Below are positions 3,867 through 62,900 of a stretch of DNA of 64,000 nt, one piece after another. The DNA is taken from IMG/VR virus record IMGVR_UViG_3300022698_000267, positions 124,001 to 188,000 of that record. The stretch is one strand, 5' to 3'. The notes beneath the pieces are model-generated. The model did no database searches, was not told the origin of the DNA, and saw only the letters and a list, made by a program, of their open reading frames with translations. Position numbers and translations under genes: made by a program. Within the stretch, counting starts at the first letter, position 1. Every line of letters begins with the position of its first letter.

Positions 3867-3944
3867 TGCGTCTGTAGCTGAGAGGTTCAGCGGTGGACTC
3901 TAAATCCACGTCAACGTAGGTTCGAATCCTACCAGACGCACCCA
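3867..3944 (+). tRNA. amber suppressor tRNA, anticodon CTA
   Basis: Acceptor GCGTCTG/CAGACGC, D stem GCTG/CAGC, anticodon stem GTGGA/TCCAC with loop CT-CTA-AA, T arm GTAGG-TTCGAAT-CCTAC. Confidence 0.9.
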
Positions 3945-5703: not shown

Positions 5704-5837
5704 TGATGGGTGCCCTAATGGAGGGTTGATGTTCGGAGAGTTTGAGGCCGGTAACCTTTGAGCTTTTCAAACATCGGGAACAATTACCGGTTGTGAAATG
5801 ATAATTTGTAGGTTCGAATCCTACCATCCATCAGCCA
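5704..5837 (+). ncRNA. tRNA-like RNA with anticodon arm replaced by an approximately 80-nt insert
   Basis: TGATGGGTG/CATCCATCA stem + G + CCA, D arm CCCT-AATGG-AGGG, T arm GTAGG-TTCGAAT-CCTAC. Confidence 0.7.
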
Positions 5838-5865
5838 CAATTTAAAGGGAGTACTTGAGTAGGAA

Positions 5866-7069: not shown

Positions 7070-7364
7070 GCCTGGGTGGCGGAACTTTGGTAGACGCAAG
7101 GGACTTGATTTAAATTGAGCCTTTATAGGGAAACTTATAAAGTGGACACTGCTAAAACGGGGAAACCTTAACAGATATGCTGATGGCAATCCCGTGCTAA
7201 CCGAAAGGTGAGTGTAGAGACTTTATACAGTGCATCTAAGTCTAAGGATAAGATGAAGAGAAAGTCCAGACCACAAACTATTTTTATAGGCGATGAAAAT
7301 CGTAGTGGTATGAAAATCCCTCGATCGCAAGGTCGTGCGGGTTCGATTCCCGCCCTAGGCACCA
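7070..7364 (+). tRNA. tRNA-Leu(TAA) interrupted by a group I intron
   Basis: Exons 7070-7106 and 7313-7364 join to loop CT-TAA-AA; CCA. Confidence 0.9.
7107..7312 (+). mobile_element. group I intron (tRNA-Leu UAA, IC3-like), no homing endonuclease ORF
   Basis: P AAAACGGGGAAACC, Q AATCCCGTGCT, R GTGTAGAGACT, S AAGAGAAAGTCC, terminal G before AAAATCCC. Confidence 0.9.
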
Positions 7365-18957: not shown

Positions 18958-19033
18958 GGCCTGTAGCTCAGTTGGCTAGAGCCCCCGGCTCATAACCGGA
19001 TGGTCAAAGGTTCGAATCCTTTCAGGCCCACCA
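18957..19033 (+). tRNA. tRNA(CAT), probably Ile2
   Basis: GGGCCTG acceptor, CCGG-CT-CAT-AA-CCGG arm resembling lysidine-modified Ile2, CCA. Confidence 0.85.
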
Positions 19034-51161: not shown

Positions 51162-51647
51162 ATGTCTACACAAGATGTTCCTGGTTTTGGTTGTGCAGTT
51201 CGTGATGAACTTGCAATTGGTGTCTGGGGTGAACATCCAGACGGTTCCCTTATTTTAATTGAAGGTGTTGAGCAAGGCAGAGTTGTATTTTCCATGTTTG
51301 ATATGGAACCAACACCTCCCATCGAGTATCGAGATTCTCTTCCTGAAGATCAATTTAAACGTCAATTTTCATTCAGTTCCAGTGATAGTATTGTCAAAGA
51401 TGGTTGGCAATGGCATGACAAAACTCAGTTTCCCTGGAACAAAATCATGGATAATTTCCCAGATGGAACCAGATTCCCTTCCGCCGATGTTATCATGAAT
51501 GAAGCTCAAAGACTGGCTAGAGTTCGTTCTCTCAAGGGTGGTGTAGTTAAAAGAGAGAATTATGAGCACATGATTAAAAAAGTTGGAAGAAAGGGCAAAA
51601 TCATTGTTGATAAAATTCAACGAGCAATTGGTGAATTGAGGATCTAA
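51162..51647 (+). CDS. hypothetical protein
   Basis: GGAGG RBS. Confidence 0.7.
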   Translation: MSTQDVPGFGCAVRDELAIGVWGEHPDGSLILIEGVEQGRVVFSMFDMEPTPPIEYRDSLPEDQFKRQFSFSSSDSIVKDGWQWHDKTQFPWNKIMDNFPDGTRFPSADVIMNEAQRLARVRSLKGGVVKRENYEHMIKKVGRKGKIIVDKIQRAIGELRI

Positions 51648-52229
51648 AATGGCAGGGTCCTACCGTCATATCACAGATTCGGAAAATAATTTTTGTGGTT
51701 TAGAATCTATCGATAATCTTGGTGATGCTGTCGAAGCCCTTGAAGAGTGTTACTATATGATTCTACAACTTGCAGATGGTAAGAAAGAAAAGATTCATGA
51801 GGCATGGCTTCATGGATATGCATTAAAATTCTTGCCAGAAAGTAATCAGGATCTTTTTACCTATGATCGTTTTTGGGAGTAACTATGAATTTTATTCAAG
51901 CTTGTTGTAGAGGGAAAGAAGCAATTAATAAAATAGATGATTATGTTGATCAATGGCATGAAAATCATACCCATGAGCCTTTACACATATTTTTGGGTAT
52001 GACATACTTTGAATACAAAGTATGGTTAGAATCTAAAGATCCGGAGAATGTACTTTTGGAGGTTATTAAAAGTCACAAGAGCACAGTAATCGTAAATGTC
52101 AAAAATTTTGAACAAGAAATCGAAATGTTCCAATCAACATCGATATATCAAAATAAATCAACAGGATATAAAAATGGTTTTATCGATTGTGTTTCTTTAT
52201 CAAAACAAATAATTGAAGAAAGATATTAA

Positions 52230-52340
52230 TGTGGGTATAGCTTAAAGGTAAAGCGCCTGATCTAGTGAAAGAATGTAATGGTTGGTCACCTTGCCCTTTC
52301 TCGGTCAGGAGAAAATGTTCGAATCATTTGCCCACAACCA
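52230..52340 (+). ncRNA. tRNA-like RNA with a 44-nt extension in place of the anticodon loop
   Basis: TGTGGGT/GCCCACA + A + CCA, D arm GCTT/AAGC, CCTGA/TCAGG stem, T arm AAATG-TTCGAAT-CATTT. Confidence 0.75.
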
Positions 52341-52795
52341 AAGGAAACTTCTATGGACAGTTCTTATAGAGATATACCAATAGTCGAAGATGATATGGGT
52401 GAAGGTTTCAAAGATCCCATCGAAGAAAACGAAAGTGAAAAGGATAGGTCACAGAGGGAACATTACAAATTATTGGCTAAATTGAAAGATGCTGAAACAC
52501 ATAATCATGTGCTTGCGCATCTGACCAAGAATCAATTCTTTCCTGGAAAAAGGGGAAATCGTTAAGGAGATTGCAATGGCAACGGAATTAGCAAATGCAG
52601 TCAAAGTTTTATCTAATGCTCTGAAAGAGGATGAAGGATTATATATGGCATATCAATCAAATATTGCAGTAGCTTTTCAGGATGAATTTGCAAGAAGCAC
52701 TCTTAAATATAAGAATAGAGAGGAAGTTCACCGAATTTCTAATGAGGCAGCAAAGAATTTTCTGAATACTCTGATTTTTCTCAATAGAGGGTAAA

Positions 52796-53197
52796 ATGGC
52801 CGGCAAAAAAGTCTACTGTGAAAGTTGTCGAAAGTCGTATACAGCTAATAGCAAATTGAACGAAGATGGTGATTTAGTTAGAATATGTCCTCATTGTTTA
52901 CGGGAAGATCCTGTTAAACCAATTCGAACTGACACTCATTGCACTGAATGTTCAAAGAACTTTATTTCAGAAGTAGACGTGACGATAAACGGGGATCATG
53001 TTGTAATTTGCCCTTATTGTGGACATGAACATTGTCGGGTGGTTGAAGATGGCGTTATTACCAGTGACAGATGGAGCACTAGATCTCATAGGAAAGATGT
53101 CTTTGCAAAAGTTTGGAAATCGAACAACTTTCCTATCCAAACTTCTACAGCCTCCCAGTTTCTTAGAGATAAGTGGCTTAGGGTCGGGGTACAATAA
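52796..53197 (+). CDS. multi-CxxC zinc-ribbon protein
   Basis: CESC, CPHC, CTEC, CPYC. Confidence 0.7.
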   Translation: MAGKKVYCESCRKSYTANSKLNEDGDLVRICPHCLREDPVKPIRTDTHCTECSKNFISEVDVTINGDHVVICPYCGHEHCRVVEDGVITSDRWSTRSHRKDVFAKVWKSNNFPIQTSTASQFLRDKWLRVGVQ

Positions 53198-53198
53198 T

Positions 53199-53840
53199 AC
53201 GATGATAAATTCAGGAACTGCAACGTCGATGTATTATGATACAGGAACAGCTTCTACAGCATATGATACAAATGCTTACGTTACTTTTACTACGTCAGAT
53301 TCCATTGTTAGTACAGGTAGTGGAAGTGCACAAGTTGTTCAAATTCAGCATCATTACCCAGACATTCAAGAAATGTTAGAGGATAATGGTGCTCGCATAG
53401 ATTTCGCCACTAAATTAAAGATGAAAGACGGCTCTATTATTCATGTAGATAAAAAAGGTAACTTTCGAATTGATGATAAAAATGCCAAGGTTATTTACAA
53501 GGGTAATAATATTCGAGAGTTTAATAGATACATTAATGCTTCCGATATTATAGAGGAGTTTATTCGATTCTTAGGTCAGGAATTTCATGTAAAACAGGAG
53601 CAAATTTTGCAGGTTCCATTGGAACTTTTTATCAATTTTCTCATTCTTAGAGCTAGTGAAGAAGATGGTGATAATTGTGATAATGAAATCAAGGCTTTAA
53701 CCATTGGTGCTAAGAAGAATAGATACTATAATCGTTGTAAATGGTGTGGTAAATTCATTCCAAAGAAGTTAATTGAGGCAGGAATACAATTCTGCAATCC
53801 AGAACACTATCAATTTAAATTAAGACAAATTAACTGCTAA
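53199..53840 (+). CDS. hypothetical protein with C-terminal CxxC
   Basis: Long ORF; start uncertain. Confidence 0.55.
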   Translation, partial: TMINSGTATSMYYDTGTASTAYDTNAYVTFTTSDSIVSTGSGSAQVVQIQHHYPDIQEMLEDNGARIDFATKLKMKDGSIIHVDKKGNFRIDDKNAKVIYKGNNIREFNRYINASDIIEEFIRFLGQEFHVKQEQILQVPLELFINFLILRASEEDGDNCDNEIKALTIGAKKNRYYNRCKWCGKFIPKKLIEAGIQFCNPEHYQFKLRQINC

Positions 53841-59964: not shown

Positions 59965-62900
59965 ATGTCTGGTTTCTTTGGATTTTTCAGGGGTGCAGCT
60001 TCATATGGCCTTGGTAGTGAATCCAGGTTAGAAGGGTTTATTCATGGTTTAAATGACTTTGTTGAGAGTGGTTCTAATCCACTACCATATGCTAATAGAA
60101 TTGTTACCCCAACAATTGATTTTGCATCTGGTCCTTCTGGATTCATTACTAAAATTTCGTTGGGAGATGCACGAAATTCACACCTTTTTCGTTCTGCTAA
60201 ACTTGCTGCAATGAATTCTAACATTCCGACTATGCCTATGCAAGATGCCAGACTTGGAGAATTCTCTATTGTTACAAATCCAGAAGCTTATGGGGGCAAT
60301 TTAGAAGCTGCATCTATTGGTCATGCTTTAAATTCCTATATATCTGTTATGGGAATGCAAGATCCAAATCTAGCCACGTTTCTTACTGAAGGTTCTCTTA
60401 GAAATAAAACGCAGTTTAATCCGATACAGAATTTTTTGGCTTCTGAATTTCGTTGGCAGGATAGTTCTCAGAGTATGCAAGATAGAAATTTATTCTACTC
60501 TAATCAATTTCTTGGAACGATGGATGTATACGGACATCCTAGTGGAGGTGAATTTCAAGGACAAAGAGCACATCCAGAGAGATGGGGTGATACTAATCTT
60601 CTACGGAGATTAAATCCTGGCATAAATGATCTAATAAATTCTATTTCAATTGATGATTCTGCTTCTGGTATTAAAGCTGGTTTTGAAAAACAAATGCTTC
60701 GTGTCAAACATTCGGCAGATAGTCAATACGAAAACATTCATGATTTTGCTACACCTAATACTATAATTTCAAGAAGTCAACTTTCAGGAACAGATTTTGA
60801 TAGACCTGTACAGACTGATGCCGATGTTGAAGGAAGACCAGATGTAACACCCACCGATATTATCAATAGAAGTGGTGAAGGAATTGCTTCTGTACTTGCA
60901 TCTACCACAGGAACGACACTCGATGTTTACAATTCAGAAACTGGTGAGCTTTTGCATACACAAAGTCCGTCAGGAACTACAAGACCATCGACAGAAGCTC
61001 CTACAGAAGGAAATGTTCCAAGTTCTGGTGAGGCAGCAAGTGGAAATATTTACGTTTTCGCTGATGGTTACATTCCAGATCCAGATTTTGCAGATGAAGA
61101 AGAATACATTAGGAATAGATATGGAGACGAAGCTGCAAATGCTTTTACTGAGGGTCGTTATGCCTCTTCTGTTGAAGATGCTGAAAGAATGTCTAGAGCT
61201 GGTGGACCAGAATCTTCAGAAGGTGTTCGACCTAGTGGAAATCCTGAAGTTAGACACACAGACACACATTCAATAGACAATACTCCTCCCAGTTTACAAG
61301 ATACACCTACTCAAAGAACAGGTCGTCCAGGTCCATTTTCTGAATCTGGTGGTTTCAATGTAAACTATGAGGATTTTGATAGTGCAGCAAGGGCTCAGTA
61401 TGATGAACGTAATGTTAACGTTGTTGATTCACCTTCTTCTATAGATACAAGTGCTATAAGAATCATATCAGAAGCAGAATATGATGCTCTTGAAAAGCGT
61501 TATCCTATTGGTGGAATTGGTCATCAGGAGGAAGGTTCACATTTAGTTAGCACACCAGATGCTGTGCATGCAGTAAATACCCTTCGTGACATTCAAAAGA
61601 GCTTTGGCTTGGCCAATGATTCTGACAGAAGATTTTATGAGAATATAGGGAAAAATGCTATAGGAGAAAGAAATTTTTCGGTACATTCTGGTGAGTTGGA
61701 CACAGTAACTAACAAAATTAAACGAAAGATGATGTTGGGTGGAGCTATAGTTGGAAGATCTGAAGAAGGTGGACATTTATGGTTAATGGATGAACCATTA
61801 AACAGTCTTTGGGAAGTGGGAAGTTCAATGAGTAATCGTCCACAAGATTTTCCACGTCCTAACTTTCGTACCATACAAGATACACCAATTCCAGAGATGG
61901 ACCCAAATCCTGATAACTGGCGTATACGAAATATGGACATTAGTATGCGGGATGCTATGGGAAAGGGATACATCATGCCGATTGGTGGGCGTGATGCCGT
62001 TTTTTTGCCTAGTTTTGCTAACCCAGATTTTAGTATGGGTGTAGAAATAGAATCATTTCTTACTAGACCAATTTCTGAAATCACTCGTGGAATTCAACAG
62101 AACTATGGTTATAATCTTAATCATATGGCTTTTAATGGAGAATTTAGTTCCCATAATGACCCATCCGTTTATGGTGGTGGTAAAGAATACATAACTCCGG
62201 TTATGTCTGGACTCAGAGCTTTTAAAGCAGGATATCTTCTTGGGGAACAGCTAAAGTCTCTTGGAGATGTTCCTCCAATACATAGAGGTCCAGATAGATT
62301 TGACACTTCAGGTTTACATGTAAATATAGGAACCATTCCAGCGTATAATAAAAAGAATGCTTTCAAATTTTCTACTGATATGTTGCGATTACAGGAAGAT
62401 GTAATAAAACGAATGTCAGAACCGGATGTCAGATACAATTACTATTCTAGACCAAGTACGGGAGGTCAGTATTCCCCTTATAATTCTACAATAAAACCTG
62501 AAAGACTTCCTCCAGATGCTCGTAGTTCTCCACATGAGGAACATGGAAGACAGTTTTGGTCTCAATCCATTTCTAAATTTAGGTCTGCTGGAAGAACGAA
62601 TGAATATGATTACTACAGAAATAATGGAAAACATTATTCAAATGTAGCTCTTGAGATGTCAATGTCAGATGTTGGCAAATTGGCAAAGTACAAAACGTTT
62701 GGTATGCATAAACTTCAATTAATGGGTTTAATGGAATACAGGTCTCCAATGTATGTTCCTGGTGGTGATCATGTTTTAGCATCTATGGCAATGGGAACTA
62801 AATTAGCTGCAGACATTTTTCAAGCATCACAAAATCATGGTGCATTTGCTAGAACAAATAAATTGATTCCTCCTATTGGTGGTTGGTTTAATGGTGATAA

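Follow-up and report, generated by a model that had tools for sequence, protein, structure and literature searches.

To our knowledge, the anticodon loop is the site of every known tRNA intron. Protein-dependent splicing of tRNAs counts as an archaeal and eukaryotic trait, with bacteria and phages known for self-splicing group I introns alone. Group I introns span ~200–300 nt and are built around a catalytic core that comprises P3–P9. The pre-tRNAs of archaea and eukaryotes carry a bulge-helix-bulge (BHB) motif at their exon–intron borders, which consists of two 3-nt bulges with a 4-bp helix between them, and are processed by EndA/TSEN together with RtcB. The latter represents the archaeal/metazoan tRNA-splicing ligase family. 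Hairpins inserted into structural RNAs are also found in the intervening sequences of bacterial 23S rRNA, which are excised by RNase III without religation and leave a fragmented, functional rRNA. Other RNAs resemble tRNAs only in part. The T4 transcripts rnaC and rnaD (species 1 and 2) are small stable RNAs with partial tRNA features, and rnaC combines a canonical T arm with long hairpins. The tRNA-like domain of tmRNA and the Y RNA-like YrlA are mimics in which a long helix replaces the anticodon arm. Phage tRNAs are of current interest as counter-defence against tRNA-cleaving immunity (PMC11555353, PMC13096335). A literature search turned up no description of phage tRNA genes with short inserts outside the group I class, nor of tRNA mimics built in this way.

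The locus described here combines a complete tRNA core with a hairpin in place of the anticodon loop. It lies in a 64,000-nt stretch of DNA (the window), which corresponds to bases 124001–188000 of a virus record of 273,563 bp with an estimated completeness of 97%. The phage has a G+C content of ~37%, a Gp23-type major capsid protein, and a large terminase that is ~25% identical to cyanophage terminases and to that of an uncultured 484-kb phage. The capsid type and the terminase relationships identify it as a deep-branching T4-like jumbo phage.

Structure of the element

The element occupies positions 52230–52340 (+) of the window, is 111 nt long, and ends in ACCA. The tRNA model RF00005 matches it over its full length (52231–52336, model positions 1–71) with 48.4 bits at a gathering score of 29 bits and an E-value of 2.8e-7 for the whole window. 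Its minimum free energy (MFE) fold is a cloverleaf (−32 kcal/mol, z −2.2). The likeness to tRNA is far beyond chance. Three metagenomes that were assembled separately contain the identical sequence, which shows that the element is no assembly artefact.

All parts of a tRNA except the anticodon loop can be located on the plus strand. The 5′ strand of the acceptor (52230–52237) is made up of TGTGGGT and A52237, which can contribute an optional eighth pair. It is followed by the D arm GCTT-AAAGGTA-AAGC (52240–52254), which is supported by the Rfam alignment and the fold and contains A14 and G18G19. The anticodon stem is formed by CCTGA (52256–52260), found in the Rfam alignment, the fold, and the ARAGORN model, and by TCAGG (52305–52309), found in the first two. 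A 4-nt variable loop (AGAA) and the T arm AATG-TTCGAAT-CATT (52314–52328) take up positions 52310–52328, and the 3′ strand of the acceptor, the discriminator A52337, and the encoded CCA (52338–52340) complete the molecule at 52329–52340. The set of tertiary-contact nucleotides is complete (U8, A14, G18G19, T loop TTCGAAT, 4-nt variable loop, discriminator A, and CCA), and all stems are intact with G.U as the sole non-Watson–Crick pairs. In the acceptor, 52230–52236 pairs with 52330–52336. The extra pair A52237:T52329 can be assigned to the acceptor (8/4 layout) or T52329 to the T stem (7/5 layout), an ambiguity that arises because A52237 and A52313 compete for T52329. The MFE and centroid folds differ solely in this eighth acceptor pair.

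The anticodon region departs from this canonical picture. A 7-nt loop on a 5-bp stem is absent, and 44 nt (52261–52304) separate the two stem strands, 43 of which are treated as an insertion within the anticodon loop in the RF00005 alignment. The insert extends the anticodon stem, starting with TC/GG and continuing through a 4×2 internal loop, GAAAG/CTTTC, a 3×1 loop, GTAA/TTGC, a bulged T, and GGT/ACC to the apical TGGTC. An irregular anticodon arm of 19 bp results, in which the insert is stacked coaxially on the stem. Folded alone, this arm reaches −16.8 kcal/mol (z −2.3), a value equalled by 3 of 200 shuffles. A short UCU repeat flanks the insert. ARAGORN makes no call on the element by default and reports a tRNA-Glu(CUC) with a 37-nt intron at 31/32 when introns are allowed. 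An earlier note, made from the sequence alone, had described intact acceptor, D, and T arms with CCA, a core that can be drawn 7/5 or 8/4, and a CCTGA/TCAGG stem around 44 nt with these same extension pairings, and the model match and the folds agree with it in each of these respects.

Several known RNA classes were considered for the element and rejected. The tmRNA option of ARAGORN reports none in the genome, and no Rfam tmRNA model matches the element. A Y RNA-like identity finds neither a YrlA match at the element nor a Ro/TROVE protein (PF05731) in the genome. Among ribozymes and riboswitches, no Rfam family matches at E ≤ 10 except for a chance 9-bit glmS. CUGAUC and GAAA are present as in a hammerhead, but inspection by eye shows that stem II is absent. 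A repeat or mobile-element origin of the insert was dismissed as well, since the phage genome holds no other copy of it.

tRNA genes and tRNA-processing enzymes of the phage

The phage genome gives 22 matches to the tRNA model, 20 of them inside the window. With few exceptions, its ordinary tRNAs have an encoded CCA at the 3′ end. No tRNA for Gly, Val, His, Cys, or Trp was called by ARAGORN, whether run by default or with introns allowed. The tRNA cluster extends as far as position 19033, the end of its last tRNA, which confirms that the element lies 33 kb away from it.

A second tRNA-like gene (5704–5838 of the window, +) is located directly 3′ of a tRNA-Gln. It consists of a 9-bp acceptor, a D arm, a 19-bp hairpin at the anticodon position, an extra arm, and a canonical T arm, with UGAUGGG at the 5′ end and CAUCA-G-CCA at the 3′ end (fold z −2.8). 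Neither Rfam nor ARAGORN calls it as a tRNA. At 7070–7364 (+) of the window, the anticodon of a tRNA-Leu(UAA) is split by a 206-nt group I intron (RF00028, 59.7 bits, E 7e-15), and this gene is overlooked by default ARAGORN and by the whole-window Rfam gathering run. An amber-suppressor-type tRNA with the anticodon CUA, labeled Pyl by ARAGORN, is encoded at 3867–3944 (+) of the window and has an 8-bp acceptor (with an extra U:A pair) and a 5-bp T stem. A link to stop-codon recoding was rejected, as a crude ORF test across the genome gave no sign of TAG or TGA reassignment and TAG closes 61 of 261 long ORFs. Outside the window, at genome positions 60324–60892, two “tRNA-Asn(AUU)” genes with 314- and 53-nt introns are reported by ARAGORN when introns are allowed. 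They adjoin two real tRNAs at 60014–60199 and are probably spurious.

The phage encodes several enzymes that act on tRNAs. RtcB (394 aa, 259 bits) is found at genome positions 220391–221575, immediately 3′ of a 160-aa HD-domain protein (L003:867–2601, +, corresponding to genome ~219.8–221.6 kb, outside the window). Two tandem Thg1-like 3′–5′ nucleotidyltransferases of 269 and 272 aa are located beside an AAA_33 kinase-like ORF (L144:1105–2744, −, genome ~97.2–98.9 kb, likewise outside the window). Thg1 represents the tRNA-His guanylyltransferase family. A general link between Thg1 and insert-bearing tRNA-likes was rejected, as neither the Klebsiella phages nor three huge phages with such genes have Thg1. 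Ligases of the Rnl1 and Rnl2 families gave no match in the phage, and the Rnl1 control was positive nowhere, so that their absence is not established. In a comparative review of jumbo phages, gene sets of this kind, which include RtcB, are read as serving the repair of tRNAs cut by host nucleases (PMC7824862).

Genomic setting

The element exactly occupies the gap between the stop codon of one small ORF and the ribosome-binding site of the next. The TAA of the upstream 114-aa ORF (51885–52229, +) abuts the element, and the ribosome-binding site AAGGAAA of the downstream 70-aa ORF (52353–52565, +) begins 2 nt past the CCA. Both ORFs appear in the ORF list and in the JGI gene calls. Homologues of the upstream ORF were searched outside this phage and none were found, and no tRNA-like neighbour was found beside the homologues of the downstream ORF.

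Together with seven small ORFs, the element forms a 2.7-kb block (51162–53840, +) that is absent from the nearest relative found, the 55-kb contig L004, which carries no tRNA within its 55 kb. In L004, the gene of a 582-aa methyltransferase-like protein directly adjoins those of a 108-aa and a 290-aa protein (5′–3′ exonuclease), and the three proteins share 58%, 57%, and 69% amino acid identity, respectively, with their counterparts in the phage. As the block is placed between genes that are adjacent in L004, the element is part of an accessory island. The ORF families of the block include zinc ribbons and a weak Lar-like match and are otherwise uninformative; one ORF is a double zinc ribbon with a weak match to Lar-like restriction alleviation. 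A terminator or promoter role of the element was rejected, because no signal rises above shuffle level. For the same reason, the element is likely co-transcribed with the neighbouring ORFs.

Analogues in other phages

A blastn match to the D arm led to Klebsiella jumbo phages of ~300 kb (Maaswegvirus, 13 records), which have been cultured and which carry two insert-bearing tRNA genes. Kp-1 (L026:1506–1613 in FBKp24, MW394391) is 108 nt long with 40 nt between the strands of the anticodon stem and scores 34.4 bits with RF00005. Kp-2 (L026:1027–1128 in the same phage) is 102 nt long with 30 nt between the strands and scores 38 bits. Kp-1 is annotated as “tRNA-OTHER” in one record and nowhere else, and Kp-2 has no annotation in FBKp24, the record examined. 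The description of FBKp24 gives nine tRNAs found by tRNAscan-SE and mentions neither of the two (bioRxiv 10.1101/2021.03.02.433402). The CDS-free stretch that extends 3′ of both elements to ~2200 contains more T-arm-like pieces (e.g., ~1660–1730).

The element, Kp-1, and Kp-2 have an unusual layout in common. All three start with U1:A72 and G2:C71, end with A73-CCA, and have a 4-bp T stem. Each has a 7-bp acceptor with one extra layer, which is A:U in the element and CxA and GxA in the Klebsiella elements. A UG start is found in 26 of 351 ordinary phage tRNAs.

The Klebsiella elements further allow the conservation of such inserts to be compared between two phages. Kp-1 is identical at 105 of 108 positions in FBKp24 and MJ359; its upstream flank is barely alignable, and MJ359 carries a 160-nt insertion immediately 3′ of the CCA. 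Within the insert, 38 of 40 positions are identical, with both changes located in the apical loop and the unpaired 3′ tail invariant; the remaining change lies in the anticodon stem, where G-C replaces a G.U pair. Kp-2 differs by one insert base between the two phages. In Kp-1 and Kp-2, to which this observation applies (the flank comparison to Kp-1), the constraint on the insert, its unpaired tail included, therefore equals that on the tRNA body. The conservation between these two Klebsiella-phage variants could also reflect recent exchange.

Further candidates came from 16 large IMG/VR contigs that encode RtcB, whose tRNA-cluster regions (264 kb in total) were surveyed with ARAGORN, introns allowed. 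Of 329 calls, 10 were flagged as intron-bearing, and ~7 of these are tRNA-likes with canonical acceptor, D, and T arms and 23–106 extra nt in the middle domain. They include L123:2257–2354 (−), in which a 5-bp stem encloses a 29-nt hairpin, L122:11507–11634 (−), L118:11690–11824 (−), L119:11869–11998 (+), and L117:2349–2487 (−), all from huge (390–430 kb) metagenomic phages. The 8/4 layout is not found among them. Since the contigs were chosen for RtcB, no association with RtcB can be claimed. The “Ser” readings that ARAGORN gives for Kp-2 and for L123:2257–2354 conflict with their short variable loops. It is proposed that jumbo-phage tRNA-likes with an enlarged anticodon arm form a class, which the element, Kp-1, Kp-2, L123:2257–2354, and others would fit. 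Such genes would join canonical acceptor, D, and T arms to a hairpin of tens of additional nt within the anticodon stem and would be conserved as a unit, a trait seen in Kp-1 and Kp-2. Because tRNAscan-SE misses both elements of FBKp24 and default ARAGORN misses the element, this class is probably under-counted.

Ancestry of the element

The element is not paralogous to any other tRNA of the phage. Its exons were compared with 456 phage and metagenome tRNAs, a set in which the D arm of the element is over-represented, and the two best matches are tRNA-His(GUG) genes (L017 and L019). The element and these two genes share the D arm, the CCTGA/TCAGG stem, an AGA(A) variable loop, and a GTGG acceptor. 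A tRNA-His lineage would be expected to show an 8-bp acceptor owing to an extra −1 nucleotide, a 4-nt variable loop, and a GUG anticodon. The element has an eighth acceptor pair and a 4-nt variable loop, whereas its GUG at 52265–52267 is not placed in a loop, and an additional A stands before the CCA. The D-arm sequence recurs in many phage tRNAs of many isoacceptors, and together with the enrichment of the comparison set this makes His ancestry likely rather than proven. The resemblance thus suggests that the element likely descends from a tRNA-His-type gene.

No second copy with the same insert was found in IMG/VR or the JGI metagenomes with exact and gapped DNA patterns, which returned just ordinary tRNAs that share the D arm, and no such homologue was found in GenBank phages by megablast and blastn. 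A metagenomic tRNA with the same D arm (L020:606–720, +) has a 7-bp anticodon stem (CCAATGG/CCATTGG) that closes a 12-nt loop.

Interpretation

The element is best explained, though tentatively, as the gene of a stable, non-decoding tRNA-like RNA of ~111 nt with a remodelled anticodon arm. From its structure, its genomic setting, the absence of a known intron signature, and the conserved analogues in jumbo phages, we infer how this RNA may be expressed and processed, how stable it may be, and which role it may have. The element would be transcribed together with the surrounding small ORFs and released by RNase P at its 5′ end and by 3′ trimming to the encoded CCA, a step that would also part the upstream from the downstream cistron. 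The released RNA would retain the irregular 19-bp anticodon arm. Through its canonical L-shaped core (acceptor, T arm, D arm, elbow, and CCA), it could still be bound by enzymes that read this core, among which RNase P, the CCA enzyme, the Thg1-like enzymes of the phage, tRNA-attacking host toxins, and possibly an aminoacyl-tRNA synthetase indifferent to the anticodon are candidates. As a 7-nt anticodon loop would be missing at the right distance from the CCA, the RNA would not decode on the ribosome. It would likely act as a decoy, sponge, or regulator in a tRNA-centred conflict between phage and host.

This explanation is based first on the complete tRNA core that lacks an anticodon loop and on the coaxial arm, which is more stable than shuffled sequences. 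It is further supported by the Maaswegvirus analogues that share the unusual layout, by the additional enlarged-middle tRNA-likes of RtcB phages and the 19-bp arm of 5704–5838, by the precedent of T4 rnaC, and by the location in an accessory island of small ORFs. The insert conservation of Kp-1 shows the pattern of a functional arm rather than of a discarded intron. The full tertiary core and the encoded CCA, however, would equally be expected of a real pre-tRNA, and the missing Gly, Val, His, Cys, and Trp tRNAs as well as the presence of RtcB also count against a non-decoding RNA. Moreover, the three copies of the element are identical and thus offer no variation that could show selection on the element itself.

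It is less probable that the element is a pre-tRNA with a short, protein-removed intron. In this scheme, an endonuclease of the phage or host that leaves 2′,3′-cyclic phosphate and 5′-OH ends would excise 37–44 nt, and the phage RtcB would join the exons. The position of the insert strictly inside the anticodon loop, the fully canonical core with CCA, the RtcB gene beside an HD-domain protein, the two Thg1-like enzymes, and a tRNA set short of five amino acids are in line with splicing. So are the RtcB of FBKp24 and the fact that the further insert-bearing tRNA-likes all come from RtcB phages, though these phages were selected on RtcB.

The known intron types, however, leave no trace at the locus. 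A group I intron was rejected since the 44-nt insert is too short and RF00028 gives no match at E ≤ 10 in 52100–52500; a comparable search recovers the intron of the phage tRNA-Leu(UAA) at 59.7 bits. For a BHB intron, which the earlier note had put forward for checking, exhaustive enumeration found no strict hBHBh′ motif in the element, Kp-1, or Kp-2. The same note had envisaged an endonuclease and a ligase as the splicing enzymes. Of these two, the ligase has a counterpart in the phage genome with RtcB (259 bits), whereas the splicing endonuclease PF01974 gave no match in the 273-kb genome, the control being positive in four archaea. The lack of a group I, BHB, or endonuclease signature supports the non-decoding explanation.

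The possible splice products point in the same direction. Every 7-nt loop that can be built from the first k and the last 7−k bases of the insert was enumerated, and only UUCUCGG, which would yield Glu(CUC), has U33 and a purine at 37. Other candidates place a UAG or GUG anticodon in less canonical loops; excision at the canonical position 37/38 results in UCUAGUG with C33 and U37. A loop with U33 and R37 is found by ARAGORN for the element and for Kp-1, which favors splicing, but in the element this sole canonical loop requires the 3′ cut to fall inside the helix GAAAG/CTTTC. For Kp-2, no single excision produces a loop with purine 37. The splice sites of the element, Kp-1, and Kp-2 have no structure or sequence in common. 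A tRNA-Glu(CUC) would be redundant with the existing tRNA-Glu(UUC), and the exons are His-like and not Glu-like. RtcB was also searched in MJ359, which keeps both Kp-1 and Kp-2, and was not found. Where it is present in jumbo phages, it is already accounted for by tRNA repair (PMC7824862). Finally, the insert of Kp-1 is conserved as much as its exons.

Between the intron and the mimic, which the earlier note had left side by side, the choice is made by inference and leans toward the mimic. Splicing calls for an endonuclease yet to be named, lacks a shared recognition structure, and fails for Kp-2, whereas the mimic calls for just an unknown partner and fits the insert conservation of Kp-1. The broader proposition, under which short introns in jumbo-phage tRNA genes would belong to neither the group I nor the BHB type and would be cut by an endonuclease of unknown type before phage or host RtcB rejoins the halves, is rather improbable. 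If it were true, such introns might serve to hold a tRNA inactive, or out of reach of anticodon nucleases, up to the time of its use.

A decaying gene is about as probable as a spliced pre-tRNA. The element would then be the nonfunctional relic of a tRNA-His-type gene, carried on an accessory cassette and interrupted by an insertion in the anticodon loop, and might still be transcribed and processed. Its position in a variable island, which is distant from the tRNA cluster and has no counterpart in the nearest relative, the absence of any homologue carrying this insert from the IMG/VR, JGI metagenome, and GenBank phage sequences searched, the short UCU repeat around the insert, and an 8/4 layout with a 4-bp T stem unlike that of standard tRNAs are all compatible with decay, and three identical copies offer no variation for a test of selection. 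Yet all stems are intact with G.U as their only mismatches, the tertiary-contact nucleotides and the CCA are kept, and the insert, which folds as a coaxial extension, outdoes 197 of 200 shuffles. Two conserved genes of Klebsiella phages show the same unusual layout, and phage genomes seldom retain dead sequence in a space that runs precisely from a stop codon to the ribosome-binding site that follows. The flawless core, the coaxial insert, and the recurrence of the layout in conserved genes of unrelated jumbo phages favor a functional element over a relic.

It is highly improbable that there is no RNA gene and that the region is the 5′ coding part, or N-terminus, of ORF 52278–52565, as the earlier note had considered, for the ATG at 52278 does open a 95-aa frame, but the tRNA-model match is highly significant, a good ribosome-binding site and the ATG at 52353 yield the 70-aa product whose start JGI also calls at 52353, and the homologues have 52–89 aa and cover 54–89% of the 70-aa query.

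The element may therefore mark an overlooked class of phage tRNA mimics or give a first hint of enzymatic tRNA splicing in phages. If it is spliced, this would be something new in kind among bacteria and their viruses.

Comparison with known systems

Like the archaeal and eukaryotic BHB pre-tRNAs, the element has an anticodon-loop insert of tens of nt and shares its genome with the gene of an RtcB-family ligase. It differs from them in that there is no BHB motif and no endonuclease homologue, and in the bacterial domain of the host. In addition, its sole good splice position is at 31/32 within a helix and not at 37/38. Group I introns of tRNAs such as tRNA-Leu(UAA) likewise interrupt the anticodon loop, and the phage harbors a true example at 7070–7364, but they are ~200–300 nt long, whereas the insert of the element has 44 nt and no catalytic core. 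The intervening sequences of bacterial 23S rRNA are similar to the element in being hairpins inserted in a loop of a structural RNA. A tRNA cut in its anticodon loop, in contrast to the fragmented rRNA, would not decode.

Among the tRNA-like RNAs, T4 rnaC may serve as an old and loose precedent by analogy. Both rnaC and rnaD lack a full cloverleaf and remain below the threshold of the tRNA model, whereas the element is a complete tRNA except for the loop and lies outside the tRNA cluster. The long helix that takes the place of the anticodon arm in the tRNA-like domain of tmRNA and in YrlA is also present in the element. YrlA has its ends at the opposite pole, unlike the element, and the element does not have the G3:U70 pair.

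Kp-1 and Kp-2 of the Klebsiella phages combine, as the element does, a cloverleaf with a hairpin insert (30–40 nt), a UG start, and a CA-A-CCA end. Their insert sequences are unrelated to that of the element, and they are located within or just after the tRNA cluster. The D arm of Kp-1 is identical to that of the element, and both have UAG at nt 3–5 past the stem. By sequence, homology between the element and the Klebsiella genes is supported for this common D arm only, while a hairpin insert in a tRNA cloverleaf is the layout that they have in common.
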